The translations under genes and the position numbers were made by a program. Shown piece by piece: positions 1,597 through 58,731 of a stretch of DNA of 64,000 bases. The first letter of the stretch is position 1, and every line of letters starts with the position of its first letter. The stretch is from the IMG/VR virus record IMGVR_UViG_3300028920_000022, positions 394,730-458,729 of that record; one strand, 5' to 3'. The notes beneath the pieces were generated by a model. It saw nothing but the letters and a program-made list of their open reading frames with translations. It was not told the DNA's origin and made no database searches.

Positions 1597-1682
1597 TGCG
1601 GGAATGTAGCAAAGGCGGCTAGCCAGTCTCATAAGCTGGCGTCCATTGATCGCGAAGGGTTCGATTCCCTCTCCCGCAACCA
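1597..1682 (+). tRNA. tRNA-Met(CAT) with enlarged variable region and encoded CCA
   Basis: TGCGGGA/TCCCGCA acceptor, CCAGT-CTCATAA-GCTGG anticodon arm, GGTTCGATTCC T-arm, ACCA end. Confidence 0.85.
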
Positions 1683-1739: not shown

Positions 1740-3146
1740 ATGGGAAAATTGAAGGTGTGGAAAGTTGGCGCAGCTGGAGAACCCAGTTTTCCTGCCAATT
1801 TTGAGGTGGCTAAAAAAGCCGTTCTCCAAGTTACAGATATTAAAACAAATCGTAATAAGTATTATGCCATAGAACTACACTCTGCTGGCAATAAATATAG
1901 AGTGTTTACTCATTATGGTCGAACAGATGATCTGGACACGAATCCTAATGCTGGGGTGCGCGAGGTTCGTTACGGCAACTTGTCTGAATGTGAAGCAACC
2001 TATCATCAGATATATAGTCAAAAAACTAGCGCAAGAAAAGGATATAAGGAACTTAGCTTAGCATCTTCGCGTATTGGTTCGTCTCAATCGGTTGGTAAAT
2101 CTAGCGGACATGTTGATGACAAAACGCTTGAAAAACTAAACAACGGTAACAAGAAAGTGATAAAAAACAAAGTTTCTACACTTTCTCCCGTTGTACAAGA
2201 TTTTGTTTCTTATATTTATGCTGAAGCCACTAATGCCCTAACTAGCACAATTAATGCCAGCATTACCGCTAATGGTATCGAAACGCCTCTTGGTGTTTTG
2301 ACACTGGGTCAGATTGATAAGGGGCAAAAGATTTTGGATGAGCTTTATGATTTATTCAATTCAAAAAAGAGCCAATCAATACGTGACCATATGGTAGAAC
2401 TGAGTGGTGAGTTTTATACAGTAATTCCTCACAGAATAGGCAGAACTAGGGCTGCTGTAGAAGCTGCTGTTATTGATAGTTTAGTAGATTTTAATGCTAA
2501 GCAAGACACATTACAACTTATGCGAGACATGTTAAGTGTTTCGGGTAAAGACTCCCAGGTACTTATTAACCCTGAAATTGATAAGAAATATAATGCTTTG
2601 GGTTGCGAAATTAAAACTGTAGATAATAAAAAGTATCAAGAATTGAAGGATTATGTAGAGAAATCACAAATAAAAACCAGAAATATTAAAGTAAAGAATA
2701 TATATTCATTATGCAGACCAGAAGAACAAAAGGTTTTTGCTGATAATATTTCAAATAAACGATTACTTTTTCACGGTTCTAGGGCAAAAAACTGGGTAGG
2801 TATTCTTTCCCGTGGTTTGTTGCTTCCTAAGATTGTGGTTAGCTTGGGTGTAAACCGAACTGACGCAGGTTGGCTTGGAAATGGTATTTATTTCGGAGAT
2901 GCTGTTTGCACTACATTATACTACACGTCTCCTGGAAGGCAGAGAAACACCCGGATGATGGCGATAGCGAATGTAGCATTAGGAAAGATGAAGGATTTTA
3001 ATAGAATTACGTATGGATTAAAAGGACCACCCGCTGGATATCATAGTTGTCATGGTGTACGTGGAACCTCATTTGCAGATGATGAATATGTAATTTATGA
3101 CCAGAAACAGCAGAAACTTGAGTATTTAGTGGAGTATGTGTCATGA
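1740..3146 (+). CDS. Poly(ADP-ribose) polymerase-family protein (WGR + regulatory + catalytic domains)
   Basis: WGR-like NKYY.IELH...HYGR; helical regulatory domain (FYTVIPH); catalytic LLFHGS, GNGIYF, DEYVIYD (H-Y-E). Confidence 0.9.
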   Translation: MGKLKVWKVGAAGEPSFPANFEVAKKAVLQVTDIKTNRNKYYAIELHSAGNKYRVFTHYGRTDDLDTNPNAGVREVRYGNLSECEATYHQIYSQKTSARKGYKELSLASSRIGSSQSVGKSSGHVDDKTLEKLNNGNKKVIKNKVSTLSPVVQDFVSYIYAEATNALTSTINASITANGIETPLGVLTLGQIDKGQKILDELYDLFNSKKSQSIRDHMVELSGEFYTVIPHRIGRTRAAVEAAVIDSLVDFNAKQDTLQLMRDMLSVSGKDSQVLINPEIDKKYNALGCEIKTVDNKKYQELKDYVEKSQIKTRNIKVKNIYSLCRPEEQKVFADNISNKRLLFHGSRAKNWVGILSRGLLLPKIVVSLGVNRTDAGWLGNGIYFGDAVCTTLYYTSPGRQRNTRMMAIANVALGKMKDFNRITYGLKGPPAGYHSCHGVRGTSFADDEYVIYDQKQQKLEYLVEYVS

Positions 3147-3373
3147 GAACATCAGAACGTTTTAAAAATGCCCTTGTTGATTTTCCGGATATAGACGGTA
3201 TTCCCATCACATTTACACGTGACGAGCTGCGCATAATGCTGATGTTATGCCAGTCTGTAGAACAATTGTGTAACGAGGCGGAATCGTACATAGACATTGG
3301 GTTTGATACGGACAATGAATCGGTTCGTTTACGGGAAGCTGTGCGTATTGTTCGAGAAACATTGTATGAATAA
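3143..3373 (+). CDS. Hypothetical protein
   Basis: ATGA overlap with the PARP stop. Confidence 0.6.
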   Translation: MRTSERFKNALVDFPDIDGIPITFTRDELRIMLMLCQSVEQLCNEAESYIDIGFDTDNESVRLREAVRIVRETLYE

Positions 3374-3397
3374 TTGATTCAAAGGGGAAGAGCTGCT

Positions 3398-3670
3398 ATG
3401 ATTAAGTTCACACAATATTTGCGACCGAACGGAATTAAACAAGCGGTAGAAATCAAAAGACCCAAAGCTGTTGAAGAAATGGCGGATAAGATTATAGAAG
3501 CCGGAGGAGAGTTTGAGGTAGAGGTTTTAAGCACCGGTACAATTTCGTTGGAGGTGGTGCGGGAAAAAGATGGAGATATGGAAACGTTGTCTGCAGAAAT
3601 TTGTGACAATGGTCCTGCTGTTTTGATTGCCGTAGACAAACTGGTAAAAGCGGCTTTTGATGCTTGTTAA
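3398..3670 (+). CDS. Hypothetical phage protein
   Basis: GGGG SD-like site before ATG 3398; operon context. Confidence 0.6.
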   Translation: MIKFTQYLRPNGIKQAVEIKRPKAVEEMADKIIEAGGEFEVEVLSTGTISLEVVREKDGDMETLSAEICDNGPAVLIAVDKLVKAAFDAC

Positions 3671-3682
3671 GTTAGACGGGTT

Positions 3683-4309
3683 GTGGAGGAGTACATCATG
3701 AGTGCTGATTTTTCAAAATGCTGGTTCAATACTTGGGAAATAGAAGGATACATTAAATCACGCCCATGGCGTGATTGTTGGGGAAACCACCAACCAAACT
3801 TCAATTGTTTCTTTAGAAATAGTTGTGGCAAATTATTTCCAATGAACGATGCTGTTAAAGATGTCATGTCGTCCCACGCTCGTGAAATATTGAGCAGGCA
3901 TCCACAGGTTCAGTTGTCAGAGTTTTTGGCAAGATTAGAAGATTCAAACAATTACATCTCTTTGCGGGATGGAATACTAGAATGGAAACGTCAATGTTTT
4001 GAGGAATATAAAAAATCTTTGGAACAAGAAGAATGTTACATCAAACATGCCCTGAAATATGGATATGATAAAGTTTTAGAATTGCCCATAGAAGATCAGG
4101 AATCGATAGATTTTACAGAAGGATCTGTGTTGTTGGAAGATGGCAAATTCTCTACCACCTTTCGCGATCATAATGGTGATATTTTTATCATAAGTGGCGA
4201 CACTGAGTTACCTCTTTCGATTAAAGAAGAATTTTTGAGCACCTATAATGGGCTAGGATCTGCCCAATATTCAGAAAACAGCGAGAAGCCCGAAGATGAT
4301 CAAAGATGA
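3683..4309 (+). CDS. Hypothetical protein
   Basis: Long ORF; GGAGGAG SD before ATG 3698. Confidence 0.65.
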   Translation: MEEYIMSADFSKCWFNTWEIEGYIKSRPWRDCWGNHQPNFNCFFRNSCGKLFPMNDAVKDVMSSHAREILSRHPQVQLSEFLARLEDSNNYISLRDGILEWKRQCFEEYKKSLEQEECYIKHALKYGYDKVLELPIEDQESIDFTEGSVLLEDGKFSTTFRDHNGDIFIISGDTELPLSIKEEFLSTYNGLGSAQYSENSEKPEDDQR

Positions 4310-26859: not shown

Positions 26860-27013
26860 GGTCTCCTTTTGAGGTGTAAAACGGACCGTACTTCTCTTTC
26901 GAAAAGGTCTCTCCTGGACAGTCGCACCGGCAGAATTCCTCGCCTAAGCGGACCTAGTGCTTTCTATGTTATTTATGATTAATAATTAGCATATTTGAGG
27001 TAGGGAAATGTAA

Positions 27014-27259
27014 TTATTTGTAGTTTTTCCAATCTGCGGTAGATTTGAAGATTGGTGGATTTTGTTTTTCTTTTTTGACTCTTTGTTCGCTTTCTTGTTT
27101 AAGGCGGGCGATTTCTTTTGCTGCGATTTGATCCAGATATCCGCACATATCGCATGCATACCCTGGAGTATATATTCCCAGATATTGTCCTTTAGTTGGG
27201 TAGCCACATTTGGGACAATCTTCGTTACTAGCGGTGTGATATTTTTTGAACCAAGACAT
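27014..27259 (-). CDS. Small zinc-ribbon protein
   Basis: CPKC...CDMC. Confidence 0.6.
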   Translation of the reverse strand: MSWFKKYHTASNEDCPKCGYPTKGQYLGIYTPGYACDMCGYLDQIAAKEIARLKQESEQRVKKEKQNPPIFKSTADWKNYK

Positions 27260-27270
27260 TTTGACCTTTG

Positions 27271-27525
27271 TTATGTAATTATGTTCTGAATTATAAAATC
27301 ATTACAATTTATTTGTTCAGGATTCAATGCCGTAGCAATACTTATCTGAGAAATATAAAAATTTATTTCATTTTGAAATATTCCTTTAAATATTATTAAT
27401 CCGCAATTCTGGCATTGCCAATATTTTGGACGAATATCGTTAATCAAATTAATACCATCATTAAGTTTTGCAACCTCTTCTGCTGTTAACTCCTTCAGTT
27501 CGTGTGTACCTATTTTGAGACTCAT
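27271..27525 (-). CDS. Small Cys protein, IKDIIE family
   Basis: YWQCQNC; PEQINC; ends IIQNIIT. Confidence 0.6.
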   Translation of the reverse strand: MSLKIGTHELKELTAEEVAKLNDGINLINDIRPKYWQCQNCGLIIFKGIFQNEINFYISQISIATALNPEQINCNDFIIQNIIT

Positions 27526-27929
27526 TCTATTATATCTTTGATTATTTTTTCATTTTCGGTTAAAAATTCTTCTCTATACACGTTATCTGCTACCCACGAT
27601 ACTCTTAAAGAATTGCTATGAGAATATCCAGTTAAGATAGCGTTACAAACATGGGTAATATATTTTTTATGATTTTCTTTCCAACCGAACATAAAATGAA
27701 ATTTATTATCCACACTGGTTCCACGAAAACGTTCTTTTACAAAATGTTCGATATCAAAGTTTTCGTCAAATAAAATCAAACCTTCTAATTCACCATGAAC
27801 ATCTTCATATCTTCCGCAATATTCGACGGTCATGGTGAGGCTATAAGCCCAACCGATAATTTCTTCGTTGTACAGTACTTGAACACTATTCGATAATGTA
27901 GCGAATGTCGATATTAGTTCTACAGGCAT
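27522..27929 (-). CDS. Hypothetical protein (possible tail-tube-like), IKDIIE family
   Basis: Ends KIIKDIIE; ATGA coupling. Confidence 0.6.
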   Translation of the reverse strand: MPVELISTFATLSNSVQVLYNEEIIGWAYSLTMTVEYCGRYEDVHGELEGLILFDENFDIEHFVKERFRGTSVDNKFHFMFGWKENHKKYITHVCNAILTGYSHSNSLRVSWVADNVYREEFLTENEKIIKDIIE

Positions 27930-54666: not shown

Positions 54667-56148
54667 TTAACTAAGAAGATATCGAATTATTCGCTCGATA
54701 ATTCCTTCTTCCTCGACAGGTTTTTCTTCGACAGGTTTTTTGAATTCGTTTGTAGGAGCTTGGGCTACCGGTATCGGTTTTCCTCGCTTGGCTGCATTAT
54801 ACCTGCCCTGTATTGTAGCGGCAATATCGCCCACAGTATAGTAGCCTTTTTTGTTTCTGTCAAATGTCTTATTCCAACCGTACGCTATTGAACCCTCGCG
54901 AGCAGCAACATAATTTGATGGGCGACCCATCAAATTCGGCATAAATACCGCCAAATAAGCATCTTTTACATTATGTATCTTGCCCTTATGAGGCATATAC
55001 CAGCGTTTTACCATATCTAACTGTTTTAATGCACTTTGTGACTTCATCCATTCCGAAGCCATCTTTTTTCCTTGCAAATCTAGTTTGGTTCCCCGTGGTG
55101 GTACTCCATAGTATTTTTGTATATTAGACGGCATCCATTGAATTAAACCGGTAGCATAAGAATATTTATTTACTGCCTTTGGATTAAACCCAGATTCAAG
55201 ACTAATTACTGTAGCTAACATATTAGGATCTATATCTACGTCATTTGCTACTTGAATTAACTTTTGTTTAAACTCAGGAGTGGTTCTCTCTAACCCTCTT
55301 ACAGGAATTAATCCATCAGATCTGTAATTATTGGTTTGGCGTTCTTCTCCGGTAGGATAATGTAAATCTACACCTTTATGCCATTTAGGATTTCTACTGG
55401 TTGGAGGGTGCCAGCTAATTTTTGCTATATATTTTTCACCGCCCAATGTAAAAGCAATCAAAGTTCCTAATGGGCGATCACCAAACCTTTTTAGTATTGC
55501 TACTGCCGCTTTAGAGAGAGCTGGAGTTACCTCGCTGTCCTTCATAGCCCTCATGTTAACATTTGGCGCAGAAGGGCTCTGTTTACCAGTGGTAGCCCAG
55601 CTCCAAATTTCATCTGCCCATTGAGAATATCCCTTGCCGGTTGGGTGAATTTTGTCTACTTTGCTGTGAGGTAAATTAACTTCTCTGCTATCAAAAAAGT
55701 GTTTGGTATTACTCTGTATTGTCCCTAAAATATTTCTTTTGATAGGTACCCCGGCAGATTTATCTGGCAGTGTTGGTGCCCCTATCCATAGAGGAGTGGC
55801 TCCGGATGATTTGATGGTATTTGTTAATTCTTGGGTTAATGAGGCTATTTGTTTGGTGGACATGCCTCCGTAAGCATCATTAGTACCTAGACAAATAAAT
55901 ACGTGGGTTGGTTGAAAGGTTTTTAACTGATGGTTTAACCATTGTCTGCCTTCGCCTTTGGTCCAATACCATACAGTTTTGCTACCTACGCCTTTCCCTT
56001 TATATGGAATGCCTGCGTTTTCTATGCGCTGTTTTAATGGGGCATTTAAGCCCACAGCCAAGGAGTCACCGATCAGTAGGACTTTTTGCTGGGCGGCGAT
56101 TTTGTGGAAGTTGGAACAGGCTTTTTCCAGGGAAGAATAGCGTAACAT
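54667..56148 (-). CDS. SGNH/GDSL hydrolase fused to a lysozyme-like transglycosylase
   Basis: IGDSLA, LGTND, D.IHPTGKGY; VISLESGFNP.AVN, TGLIQWM, Y.AVFMP. Confidence 0.8.
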   Translation of the reverse strand: MLRYSSLEKACSNFHKIAAQQKVLLIGDSLAVGLNAPLKQRIENAGIPYKGKGVGSKTVWYWTKGEGRQWLNHQLKTFQPTHVFICLGTNDAYGGMSTKQIASLTQELTNTIKSSGATPLWIGAPTLPDKSAGVPIKRNILGTIQSNTKHFFDSREVNLPHSKVDKIHPTGKGYSQWADEIWSWATTGKQSPSAPNVNMRAMKDSEVTPALSKAAVAILKRFGDRPLGTLIAFTLGGEKYIAKISWHPPTSRNPKWHKGVDLHYPTGEERQTNNYRSDGLIPVRGLERTTPEFKQKLIQVANDVDIDPNMLATVISLESGFNPKAVNKYSYATGLIQWMPSNIQKYYGVPPRGTKLDLQGKKMASEWMKSQSALKQLDMVKRWYMPHKGKIHNVKDAYLAVFMPNLMGRPSNYVAAREGSIAYGWNKTFDRNKKGYYTVGDIAATIQGRYNAAKRGKPIPVAQAPTNEFKKPVEEKPVEEEGIIERIIRYLLS

Positions 56149-56160
56149 CTCAGAATAATG

Positions 56161-56574
56161 CTATTTTATTACGTCCTCGATGATGAAGTTATTTTTCCAC
56201 CCATTGAACCACTTTTCGGCTTTTCTCATGCATAAAATCATGTCAAGTTCGACATTGGAAATGGCTTGGAGTCGGTTGAACCAGTCTAAAAACAATTCAC
56301 GAAAATCTTCGTTTATCTCTTCTGATTTTGTAACAGTGTAAGTTAATTTTCCAGGAATAATTTCATCACTTTTGCAAAACAAAGCAACCTCTAATTTATG
56401 TGCGTAGTGTTCAGGATTAGGATCATCGTAGTATCTTGTCCCTGATACCACTTCTGGAATTAATCTGTACAGGTGCATGTTTAAAACATAACCCGGGCAA
56501 TATATGGAAAACTCTGACCGATCAGCTTTTTGACCGCCTCTGTTTATGTTGATGGTAGTTATATATGGTTTCAC
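56161..56574 (-). CDS. Hypothetical protein, IKDIIE-like end
   Basis: Ends FIIEDVIK. Confidence 0.55.
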   Translation of the reverse strand: MKPYITTININRGGQKADRSEFSIYCPGYVLNMHLYRLIPEVVSGTRYYDDPNPEHYAHKLEVALFCKSDEIIPGKLTYTVTKSEEINEDFRELFLDWFNRLQAISNVELDMILCMRKAEKWFNGWKNNFIIEDVIK

Positions 56575-56833
56575 TTTTCCTCGGAAAATGTTTGTACCAA
56601 GCGATTACAGCTACAATGGAAAAATTCATCACATAATTAACCATCAGCACAAAGTCAGAAGAATAATTAGCTAGAGTATAGCAAATATAGCAGAACTCTC
56701 CAATCAGCCAAAGCCAAATTGTGAGGGTCGCCATCCCATTAGCATGTCCTTCTTTTATGGCTTTCAGCATCTGCGGAAGCCCAGAGAAGGAAAAGCATAC
56801 CATACCGATAAGCCCAACTACCACTAAATTCAT
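56522..56833 (-). CDS. PQ-loop/SemiSWEET-like membrane protein
   Basis: GLIG..CF....LPQM.K..K.G.A.G; three TM helices. Confidence 0.75.
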   Translation of the reverse strand: MNLVVVGLIGMVCFSFSGLPQMLKAIKEGHANGMATLTIWLWLIGEFCYICYTLANYSSDFVLMVNYVMNFSIVAVIAWYKHFPRKSETIYNYHQHKQRRSKS

Positions 56834-56860
56834 AACGATAAATGGACAAAAATTAGTAGG

Positions 56861-56933
56861 CGGGTCCTGCGAGATTTGAACTCGCGTCTAAAAGCTTTAA
56901 AGGCTTTCGCTCTCGCCGCTGAGCTAAGGACCC
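56861..56933 (-). tRNA. Ochre suppressor tRNA (anticodon TTA), Lys-like body
   Basis: GGGTCCT/AGGACCC acceptor, GCTC/GAGC D-stem, AAAGC-CTTTAAA-GCTTT anticodon arm, GCGAG-TTCAAAT-CTCGC T-arm, G73. Confidence 0.92.
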
Positions 56934-57253
56934 AGAGCCAAATTAAGTTTGCTACATAGCTTCTTAGATTTCCTACCGGGCTCTAAAGCAATTGCTGTAA
57001 TCTCATCATCGAAATCTGGTTCTCTAAATATAGAAAACTTGATTTCCTTTTCTTTCGCCAATCCCATCAATTCCTTTAAACTATTCTCGTTTTCTGTTTC
57101 TAATATAACTAAGTAGTTTGAGGAATTGAACCACAACAAATCTTCCTGCGGATGATCGTTTACGAAAGCTCTCAGTGCATGACAGGATTGTGCTGCCCTA
57201 GCTCCTGGGGAAAGGTCTGTTCTAGTGACAATATACAGTTTGTTTTAAGCCAT
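56924..57253 (-). CDS. Peptidyl-tRNA hydrolase II-like protein with in-frame TAA at codon 3
   Basis: GAGGA SD; ATG GCT TAA AAC AAA CTG TAT ATT...; KLYIVTRTDL.PG..AAQSCHA, YLVIL, FREPD, TAIAL motifs. Confidence 0.82.
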
Positions 57254-57254
57254 G

Positions 57255-57788
57255 TCAATCCTCGTCATCGTAGTCTGATTCTTCCGCAATTTCTTTCCGT
57301 TCTTGAGCACACGCCCTGAAATAACTGGATATCCTTTCTACTATAGTTTCTGGAATGTCTTGTTTACGAAACTTTTCTTTCCACCCTTCGTATGGTGTGT
57401 CGCCAGAAATCCAATGTCTTTCTCCAACAGTAAAACAGGGAGGGTCGCTATATATCCGACCTAAATCTGTTTCAATATATGGCCAAATCTCAAGTGGTGA
57501 GTCATTACAGCAGCCGCAGTTGTGTCTAATTTCGCAATCATTGACTCGGTTATTGAGTGAAGCAGAACAAAACCTTTCAGTTTTCCACCTATTTATATGA
57601 CGGCGCAAATCCGGGTATTTTTCGCTTCTTTTTATAAGCAAGTCTAGTTCTTGTTGTTTTTTCTGGACCTCTTTTTCTAATTCGTCTATTATACCCGGAA
57701 TACTGTCTTTCCAATTTTGGTATTCCCGTTGTTCTTCGGGGGTCATTTTAAAGTAGTCTTTGTCGGTATATTTGCTGTAGTCTTTCAT
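57255..57788 (-). CDS. Hypothetical protein
   Basis: RHNCGCC.DSPLE..PY motif; ATGA-coupled to the upstream gene. Confidence 0.7.
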   Translation of the reverse strand: MKDYSKYTDKDYFKMTPEEQREYQNWKDSIPGIIDELEKEVQKKQQELDLLIKRSEKYPDLRRHINRWKTERFCSASLNNRVNDCEIRHNCGCCNDSPLEIWPYIETDLGRIYSDPPCFTVGERHWISGDTPYEGWKEKFRKQDIPETIVERISSYFRACAQERKEIAEESDYDDED

Positions 57789-58108
57789 GCTGCCTCCTGA
57801 GATATTCTGTTAATTCGTACAAAGAGCCAATCACGAACTTCCTTCCACTCAGGTCCTGAAACAGAAAACTCAATATCAGAGGCTCTGCAAATATATTTTG
57901 CAATATCTAGAGCCAATCCGGTATAAAACGTAGTCCTTCCAGTTGAGCAATGTTTGTCTTCGTTCGTGGTTCGTTCCATAACCTCATAAGGCAAACCACG
58001 CAAAAAACCATATGCCAACAATCTACAGCGTTGTTTCCAACCGCCAGCTTTAGCACCTTCAATCACCCAAAGTCTAAGTTGAGCAATAGCATTTTTTCTT
58101 GTATTCAT
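57785..58108 (-). CDS. Hypothetical phage protein (first gene of the pth operon)
   Basis: AGGAG SD; RCRLLAYGFLRG.PYE..E motif. Confidence 0.7.
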   Translation of the reverse strand: MNTRKNAIAQLRLWVIEGAKAGGWKQRCRLLAYGFLRGLPYEVMERTTNEDKHCSTGRTTFYTGLALDIAKYICRASDIEFSVSGPEWKEVRDWLFVRINRISQEAA

Positions 58109-58124
58109 GTCAATCTCCTAAAAA

Positions 58125-58202
58125 TCAAAAAGTTACAAACAGTTTTTCTGGAAACTTTTGTTTAGGAGGTCCACGAATTTGATTAATTTACGAGTCGTGC
58201 AT
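58125..58202 (-). promoter_or_regulatory. Leader uORF MHDS*INQIRGPPKQKFPEKLFVTF* (ochre + RGPP arrest-like motif) with attenuator-like hairpin
   Basis: Translation of 58202-58125; TAA at 58190-58188; CAAAAGTT...AACTTTTTG pairing followed by a T-rich run and the SD. Confidence 0.65.
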
Positions 58203-58242
58203 GTTGTATTTATTCTTGTTTATTAGTTGACAGCTCGACAAA

Positions 58243-58731
58243 TCATCTATGGACCCTATTAATTGCCACATCTGGCTTATCTGGCTTATCTGGCTTATCT
58301 GGCTTATCAGGTTTATCAGGTTTGTCTGGCAAAACAGGTGCAGGTTTATCTACGGAAGCCGTTCCAATAGCTTTAATTTTCTTATCTTTATTATTTTGAA
58401 ATGTTGTCAAACGAGTATCTATTTTTTCTTGAAACAAATTTATAATATCAAGAACATCTTGTTGTCTAGGTCTTTCTGGTAGTGGAATTTGCCGCATTTC
58501 TAGGTAACTATTGTTTAGCTCCTGTTTAATATTATTACAACAGCCAGACTGTATTTGGTTGTATAAAAGCATTAAATCTACTAATGCAGCTTTTGCGTCT
58601 TTATCTAAATTATCTTGTTTTACACCGTATATTCTTCTTCCAATGATTTTGCGCAAACTTTTGTATCCGGCAAGTAGCCTATTTCCGCTTCTTATCGTAT
58701 TTAGAATAATTATTTTATTTTTGGTGTTCAT
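58243..58731 (-). CDS. Hypothetical protein with PDK repeats
   Basis: ATGA-coupled. Confidence 0.6.
   Translation of the reverse strand: MNTKNKIIILNTIRSGNRLLAGYKSLRKIIGRRIYGVKQDNLDKDAKAALVDLMLLYNQIQSGCCNNIKQELNNSYLEMRQIPLPERPRQQDVLDIINLFQEKIDTRLTTFQNNKDKKIKAIGTASVDKPAPVLPDKPDKPDKPDKPDKPDKPDVAINRVHR
58271..58330. repeat. 9-bp tandem repeat (TCTGGCTTA)n encoding PDK
   Basis: About 6.7 units. Confidence 0.9.

Follow-up and report, generated by a model that had tools for sequence, protein, structure and literature searches.

We show that a Pth2-like gene (a small tRNA-recycling-type enzyme gene) of a huge phage carries an in-frame TAA after only one sense codon and overlaps at its 3' end, on the same strand, a tRNA gene whose anticodon UUA reads exactly that stop codon, suggesting that the enzyme is probably made only when this tRNA is active. 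The window, i.e., the whole 64,000-nt stretch of DNA that was analyzed, is the last 64 kb of a 458,729-bp phage contig (IMGVR_UViG_3300028920_000022). The arrangement appears to be a rare ochre (UAA/UUA) version of a conserved module of large phages that is otherwise amber (UAG/CUA), and full-text searches, within the literature that could be searched, found no paper linking a Pth2-like gene to suppressor tRNAs or to an early in-frame stop. The locus is composed of the following features, all on the minus strand:

57255..57788 (-), upstream 177-aa gene of unknown function, whose TGA (57257-57255) lies between the Shine-Dalgarno sequence and the ATG.
57259..57263 (-), Shine-Dalgarno sequence GAGGA, 5 nt upstream of the ATG, inside the last codons of the upstream gene.
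57251..57253 (-), ATG initiation codon of the gated Pth2-like gene.
57245..57247 (-), gate codon, an in-frame TAA at codon 3, followed by A.
56927..57244 (-), body of the Pth2-like protein (106 codons), of which the stretch 57244-57140 has no canonical start codon and encodes the predicted strand 1 and helix 1.
56924..56926 (-), TAG terminator of the gene, which is also nucleotides 8-10 of the tRNA.
56859..56933 (-), tRNA with anticodon UUA (56900-56898), by its anticodon an ochre suppressor, overlapping the last 10 nt of the open reading frame (ORF).

The original prediction, that this gene has a proper Shine-Dalgarno sequence and ATG but a TAA at codon 3, that it is not a pseudogene, and that the protein starts at ATG 57253 and passes the TAA, was confirmed as an observation and supported as an interpretation, although the tRNA gene had been missed. 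After ATG, GCT, and TAA, the sequence AAC AAA CTG TAT ATT GTC ACT AGA remains open to the TAG terminator, and the first ATG, GTG, or TTG after the TAA is the TTG at 57139, 35 codons downstream, which is why a mechanical ORF list shows only a 71-aa ORF. The TAA is not an assembly slip, since the contigs of the probable source run cover 56000-58299 at a depth of 24.7 without a difference and a 151-nt contig from a different study (salt marsh) is identical over 57122-57272, including ATG GCT TAA. A scan of the whole window found no other gene combining a Shine-Dalgarno sequence, an ATG, and an early stop. The upstream gene had no Pfam, PHROG, or PADLOC assignment, and megablast of the region against GenBank phages found no match. 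A sigma-70-like site (TTGACA, 17 nt, TATATT; 11 of 12 matches) overlaps the start of the gene at 57258-57230 (-), but it is not conserved in two of the homologous loci that we retrieved (designated L followed by a number), L002 and L086, and arises from the Tyr-Ile codons, and was thus treated as chance.

The 106-codon piece after the TAA matches Pfam PTH2 (PF01981) with 42.1 bits against a cutoff of 23 (E 1.2e-10), over residues 2-94 and profile positions 2-104 of 115, so that the domain begins directly after the stop. A profile of 30 homologues hit PDB Pth2 chains at E 2e-9 to 9e-4 (2zv3 at E 2e-9, also 1q7s, 1wn2, and 1xty), aligned from residue 2. The AlphaFold2 model has a pLDDT of 96.7, with strand 1 at residues 2-8 (KLYIVTR) and helix 1 at residues 13-30, and the 15 best Foldseek hits of this model are Pth2 or Pth2-like structures, with TM of 0.71-0.80 by query length in ranks 1-14 and 0.61 for the NMR model 1rzw. 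The 35 codons devoid of a start codon of their own therefore encode essential parts of the predicted fold. Nevertheless, the family is divergent, as the protein scores far below the NCBIfam equivalog cutoffs (26.7 bits against 126 for NF003314 and 21.4 against 82 for TIGR00283); we thus call it Pth2-like and not an orthologue. Its PHROG family (1866) is listed as function unknown.

Against the two closest relatives (L086, 76% identity; L007, 68%), synonymous sites are saturated while dN is 0.20-0.29, and this also holds in the 35 codons between the TAA and the first TTG, where 17 of the 25 residues shared with L086 use different codons. The region after the stop is therefore translated and under purifying selection. 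Regarding the tRNA, ARAGORN called anticodon TTA at position 34, the Rfam tRNA model (RF00005) gave 71.5 bits over the full length (E 5.8e-15), and the minimum-free-energy fold is a cloverleaf with a 7-nt anticodon loop CUUUAAA.

We then retrieved homologous loci from viral contigs, metagenome contigs, assemblies, and GenBank phages. Among 140 distinct genes with a usable 5' flank, 107 were classed as a start, 0-5 sense codons, and an in-frame stop, followed by a few codons and K-L-Y-x-x-T-R, and at least five more of those classed as having no stop carry the TAG 7-13 codons after the ATG. The gate codon is TAG in 104 genes, TAA in 2 (the window and L134), and TGA in 1 (L141), the last looking doubtful and not being relied on; the start codon is ATG in 105 of the 107, and the base after the stop is A in 83, G in 23, and C in 1. 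The closest relatives carry sequences equivalent to the Shine-Dalgarno sequence of the window before the upstream ATG (GAGGA in L002, GGAGA in L086, GGAG in L003, and AAGGA in L004), and the upstream gene is syntenic in them, with a 176-aa gene at the same place in L086-L088. The gate is position specific, since the bodies of the gated genes hold 631 Gln codons but only two genes have any further in-frame TAG. These two, L011/L012 and L093 (LR756501, 735 kb), have it at codons 25 and 32 after the K anchor, suggesting that these genomes use TAG as a sense codon more widely. The real terminators avoid the gate codon in 101 of 102 full-length gated genes: amber-gated genes end in TAA (66), TGA (33), or TAG (1), and the ochre-gated genes end in TAG (window) and TGA (L134). 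In these low-GC loci, TAG ends only about 9-11% of genes, and a neutral stop would therefore not stay TAG across lineages whose synonymous sites are saturated. The truly ungated genes are mainly one high-GC clade starting with M-A-[ST]-I-K-M-G-D-K-L-Y, in which the gene is followed by tRNAs with unusual anticodon loops (for example, the 8-nt loop UUUUCAAC) at L018:5424-5497, L028:5744-5820, L035:5160-5232, L053:5743-5896, and others; ARAGORN called them "ttca," "tc," or Glu(ttc), and they could be opal-reading or four-base-reading tRNAs. Protein databases hide the gate, because entries are truncated to V or L starts or, as in the database protein P0002, show a Q where the DNA (L089:854-870) has TAG, the gene caller having used a TAG=Gln model. 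For this reason, the inserted residue, proposed as K or Q in the original prediction, could not be inferred from such homologues; ungated homologues have S, T, A, Q, or K there, and the best matches of the tRNA itself are other suppressor-like tRNAs (up to 77%), with no clear isotype.

The gate is linked to a cognate tRNA. Of the gated TAG genes with at least 2.5 kb on both sides, 47 of 54 have a tRNA(CUA) in the locus, and all 93 suppressor tRNAs found near gated genes are on the strand of the gene. The nearest one lies within 100 nt in 25 of 73 genes and within 1 kb in 55 of 73, either just downstream (8-40 nt) or about 35-80 nt upstream. However, 33 gated genes have no suppressor tRNA in the available sequence, most being on short contigs but five having at least 2.5 kb on both sides. 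The closest relatives of the window show the arrangement plainly: L086 has GGAGAAACCC ATG ACA TAG AAA CTA TAC with a CUA tRNA 8 nt after the gene, L002 has GAGGACTAAT ATG ACG TAG AAT AAA CTA with a CUA tRNA 26 nt after it, and both share the gene order of the window. In one subclade, clusters of two to four tRNA-Thr genes, plus a tmRNA in L003, lie 1-3 kb upstream of the gated gene (L003:814-1711, L010:1630-1942, and L049:1327-1772).

Moreover, the gate codon and the anticodon covary. Both TAA genes, the window and L134 (ATG ACA TAA ATT TCT GAA AAA TTG), have a UUA tRNA, which in L134 lies 395 nt upstream and scores 63 bits in Rfam, and no TAA gene has only a CUA tRNA (Fisher p = 0.0011). Two tRNA-like T-arm remnants (GGTTCGATTCC motifs), which may be decayed tRNA genes, lie between the UUA tRNA and the gated gene in L134 (L134:1330-1500), whereas a 95-nt "tRNA(tta)" in L009 looks doubtful and was not relied on. 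In a maximum-likelihood tree, the window is sister to L086 (TAG; support 100/85) and then to L002 (TAG; 100/95), while L134 sits in a different 99/98 clade among TAG genes, indicating two independent amber-to-ochre switches, each with a matching anticodon. The tRNA of the window is only 42 of 73 identical to the CUA tRNAs of L086 and L007 and 40 of 74 identical to the UUA tRNA of L134; it was therefore replaced or has diverged strongly, and the switch was not a simple anticodon mutation. As a UUA tRNA may also read UAG by wobble, a tRNA swap followed by a TAG-to-TAA change may be an easy path.

Cultured phages also carry the module. Tenacibaculum phage pT24 has ATG AAA TAG ATA ACC and a tRNA-Sup(CUA) 2.5 kb upstream; its gene (BPT24_235, L095:2963-3915) is annotated from 3097, 32 codons too late and inside the Pth2-like domain, the gated start lying at about 2963 and the domain continuing into a longer protein (to 3915). 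Mycobacteriophages Bxz1 (gp154, L090:2470-2480) and Myrna (gp84, L091:2474-2484), both of cluster C and growing on M. smegmatis, have ATG/GTG TAG GTG ACA at the head of the annotated "peptidyl tRNA hydrolase," directly after a TTGACA...TAC(T/A)GT promoter-like site and GAAGG/GGAGG, with a CUA tRNA about 130-300 nt downstream, annotated "tRNA-OTHER" in Bxz1. In these two phages, the GTG after the TAG is the annotated start and is well spaced from the Shine-Dalgarno sequence, so that initiation after the stop is a live alternative there, as could be a leaderless mRNA beginning at the codon before the TAG, 6-7 nt after a TANNNT box. The huge phages LR756500 and LR756501 also have the gate and CUA tRNAs. 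In contrast, XacN1 and RAS14 do not carry the module, their Pth2-like domain being the C-terminal part of a longer ORF with no gate.

Altogether, these findings led us to favor, with good though not full confidence, a model of translation gated by the phage's own suppressor tRNA. Ribosomes would start at ATG 57253 and, after one sense codon, meet UAA, where release factor would end translation with only a dipeptide unless tRNA(UUA) decodes the stop, in which case the full 109-residue protein with a predicted Pth2 fold would be made; the enzyme would thus appear only when the suppressor tRNA is expressed, processed, and charged. Several parts of this model are inferred: (i) the tRNA and the mRNA may be cut from one transcript, and RNase P cleavage at the tRNA 5' end would remove the mRNA's own terminator, so that maturation of the tRNA and translation of that same transcript copy would exclude each other; (ii) the stop may sit at codons 2-6 because an abort there costs almost nothing and because very short peptidyl-tRNAs terminate poorly and tend to drop off (PMC2490762), giving the suppressor time to compete; and (iii) the enzyme may hydrolyze peptidyl-tRNA, or a related acyl-tRNA, accumulating when stop codons are suppressed in the infected cell, which would tie its dose to suppressor activity. 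A more speculative and rather unlikely hypothesis, although of great interest, could be a self-contained control loop in which the enzyme acts back on the suppressor's acylated or peptidyl form, or on the products of suppression, the pair setting how strongly stop codons are read through; such feedback is possible but unsupported. If so, the ochre version would be the first natural case of UAA being decoded in a bacterial virus, and the "orphan" suppressor tRNAs of standard-code phages, such as Bxz1-type mycobacteriophages and pT24, would have their first identified target.

The main alternative, which we consider unlikely, is that ATG-GCT-TAA is a separate two-codon minigene whose stop is never decoded, the Pth2-like protein being made by reinitiation or direct initiation at a noncanonical codon such as CTG 57238, the fallback of the original prediction, or ATT 57232. 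Indeed, the codon after the stop is ATT, ATC, or ATA in 67 of 107 gated genes and GTN in 19 of 107, the GTG of Bxz1 and Myrna lies 7 nt after GAAGG/GGAGG, and two-codon minigenes are known to be translated and to release peptidyl-tRNA, the substrate of Pth (PMC2490762); in some lineages, initiation just after the stop therefore cannot be excluded. However, this reading does not explain the near-exclusive use of TAG in genomes where TAA is the common terminator, the cognate suppressor tRNA next to the gene, the two TAA/UUA pairs, or the terminator differing from the gate codon. In the clade of the window, the codons after the stop are AAC, AAA, and AAT, initiation at the CTG is not supported because this codon is CTA in both closest relatives, no Shine-Dalgarno sequence precedes the ATT, and in ungated homologues (MA[ST]IKMGDKLY) the Ile is an internal residue. 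A recently inactivated pseudogene or a sequencing error with a coincidental tRNA, although a stop at codon 3 would normally inactivate a gene, is refuted as far as sequence data can refute it by the identical sequence in an independent metagenome, the purifying selection, including upstream of the first canonical start, and the same feature in more than 100 diverged homologues.

Reassignment of TAA throughout the genome is very doubtful, at least within the 64 kb examined of the 459-kb genome. The tRNA(UUA) is present, and TAA is underused as a terminator in the window (38% GC) compared with amber-gated loci of matched GC (31% against 56%; TAA 130, TGA 77, and TAG 25 in the latter; chi-square 18.8, p = 8e-5) while TGA is overused, which fits selection by an active ochre suppressor but rests on crude gene calls and on related, nonindependent loci. 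Nevertheless, under the standard code, a greedy set of 98 nonoverlapping ORFs covers 91% of the window, of which 47 end in TGA, 30 in TAA, and 21 in TAG; the genes ending in TAA show no extra backup stops, so that an efficient ochre suppressor would extend many phage proteins, an argument that weighs against the gate model. Treating TAA as sense added spurious ORFs and lowered the mean ORF length, and in-frame ORF pairs split by TAA (3143-4309 on the plus strand and 26986-27549 on the minus strand) look like separate genes and have no shared Pfam domain. A homology test for in-frame stops in neighboring genes of all loci was uninformative, because antisense frames of conserved genes align equally well for all three stop codons. 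A survey of 10,754 jumbo phage genomes found none that recode TAA (PMC13037316). Elsewhere in the window, a 137-aa ORF (56574-56161) and a 493-aa ORF with homology to the transglycosylase and baseplate-hub families (56148-54667), both on the minus strand, are in the same frame and separated only by a TAG and four codons, which could be chance or a read-through fusion; a 162-aa ORF (58243-58731, minus strand) ends in a run of P-D-K repeats (PDKPDKPDKPDKPDKPD), and a tRNA-Met call (1597-1682, plus strand) is 86 nt long, unusual for a Met tRNA, and may hold an insertion or an intron.

Suppressor tRNAs occur in many phages that otherwise use the standard code, and their targets have been unclear; the XacN1 authors, for example, searched downstream of that phage's amber stops and found no target of its CUA suppressor tRNAs (PMC5852040). 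The gene next door to these tRNAs would provide a specific, conserved target, suggesting a simple circuit coupling a tRNA-recycling-type enzyme to suppressor activity. Under this reading, the window and L134 imply that UAA, the one stop codon never reported as reassigned in bacteria or phages in the literature searched, is decoded at least at this site.

As in phages with stop codon recoding (code 15, TAG to Gln; code 4, TGA to Trp), where phage-encoded suppressor tRNAs decode in-frame stops and recoding was proposed as a way to control when certain genes are translated (Borges et al., 10.1101/2021.08.26.457843; PMC9523058), a phage-encoded tRNA is here the likely decoder. In that work, however, many (mostly late) genes carry many recoded codons at ordinary positions and only TAG and TGA are recoded, TAA appearing only in the tally of suppressor-tRNA anticodons, whereas the evidence here is for a single codon at a fixed place (codons 2-6) in one gene physically linked to the tRNA, also in phages annotated with the standard code (Bxz1, Myrna, and pT24). 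The autoregulation of prfB (RF2) through an in-frame UGA at codon 26 likewise involves a translation-factor gene whose early stop reports on the state of the termination machinery and sets the gene's own output, but RF2 passes the stop by a +1 frameshift and is itself the factor that reads it, while here the frame is unchanged. A Shine-Dalgarno sequence, AUG, one sense codon, and UAA is exactly the form of a two-codon minigene, such as the lambda bar minigenes, which release peptidyl-tRNA recycled by peptidyl-tRNA hydrolase, more of it accumulating the shorter the minigene (PMC2490762); bar minigenes are nevertheless free-standing and not followed in frame by a protein, whereas here the "minigene" is the unsuppressed head of the hydrolase-like gene itself. 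Finally, the phage protein shares with archaeal and eukaryotic Pth2 (PF01981; PDB 2zv3, 1q7s, and 1xty) the predicted fold (TM 0.76-0.80) and the motifs K-x-V/I-x-V-x-R-x-D-L, A-Q-x-x-H-A, and the C-terminal T-A-I-A-x-x-P, but the phage family lacks the two-residue G-K-G-K insertion preceding the AQ..HA motif in the solved proteins, the window having P-G-A-R, and has R-E-P-D, with E75, P76, and D77 invariant, where they have R-D-A-G.
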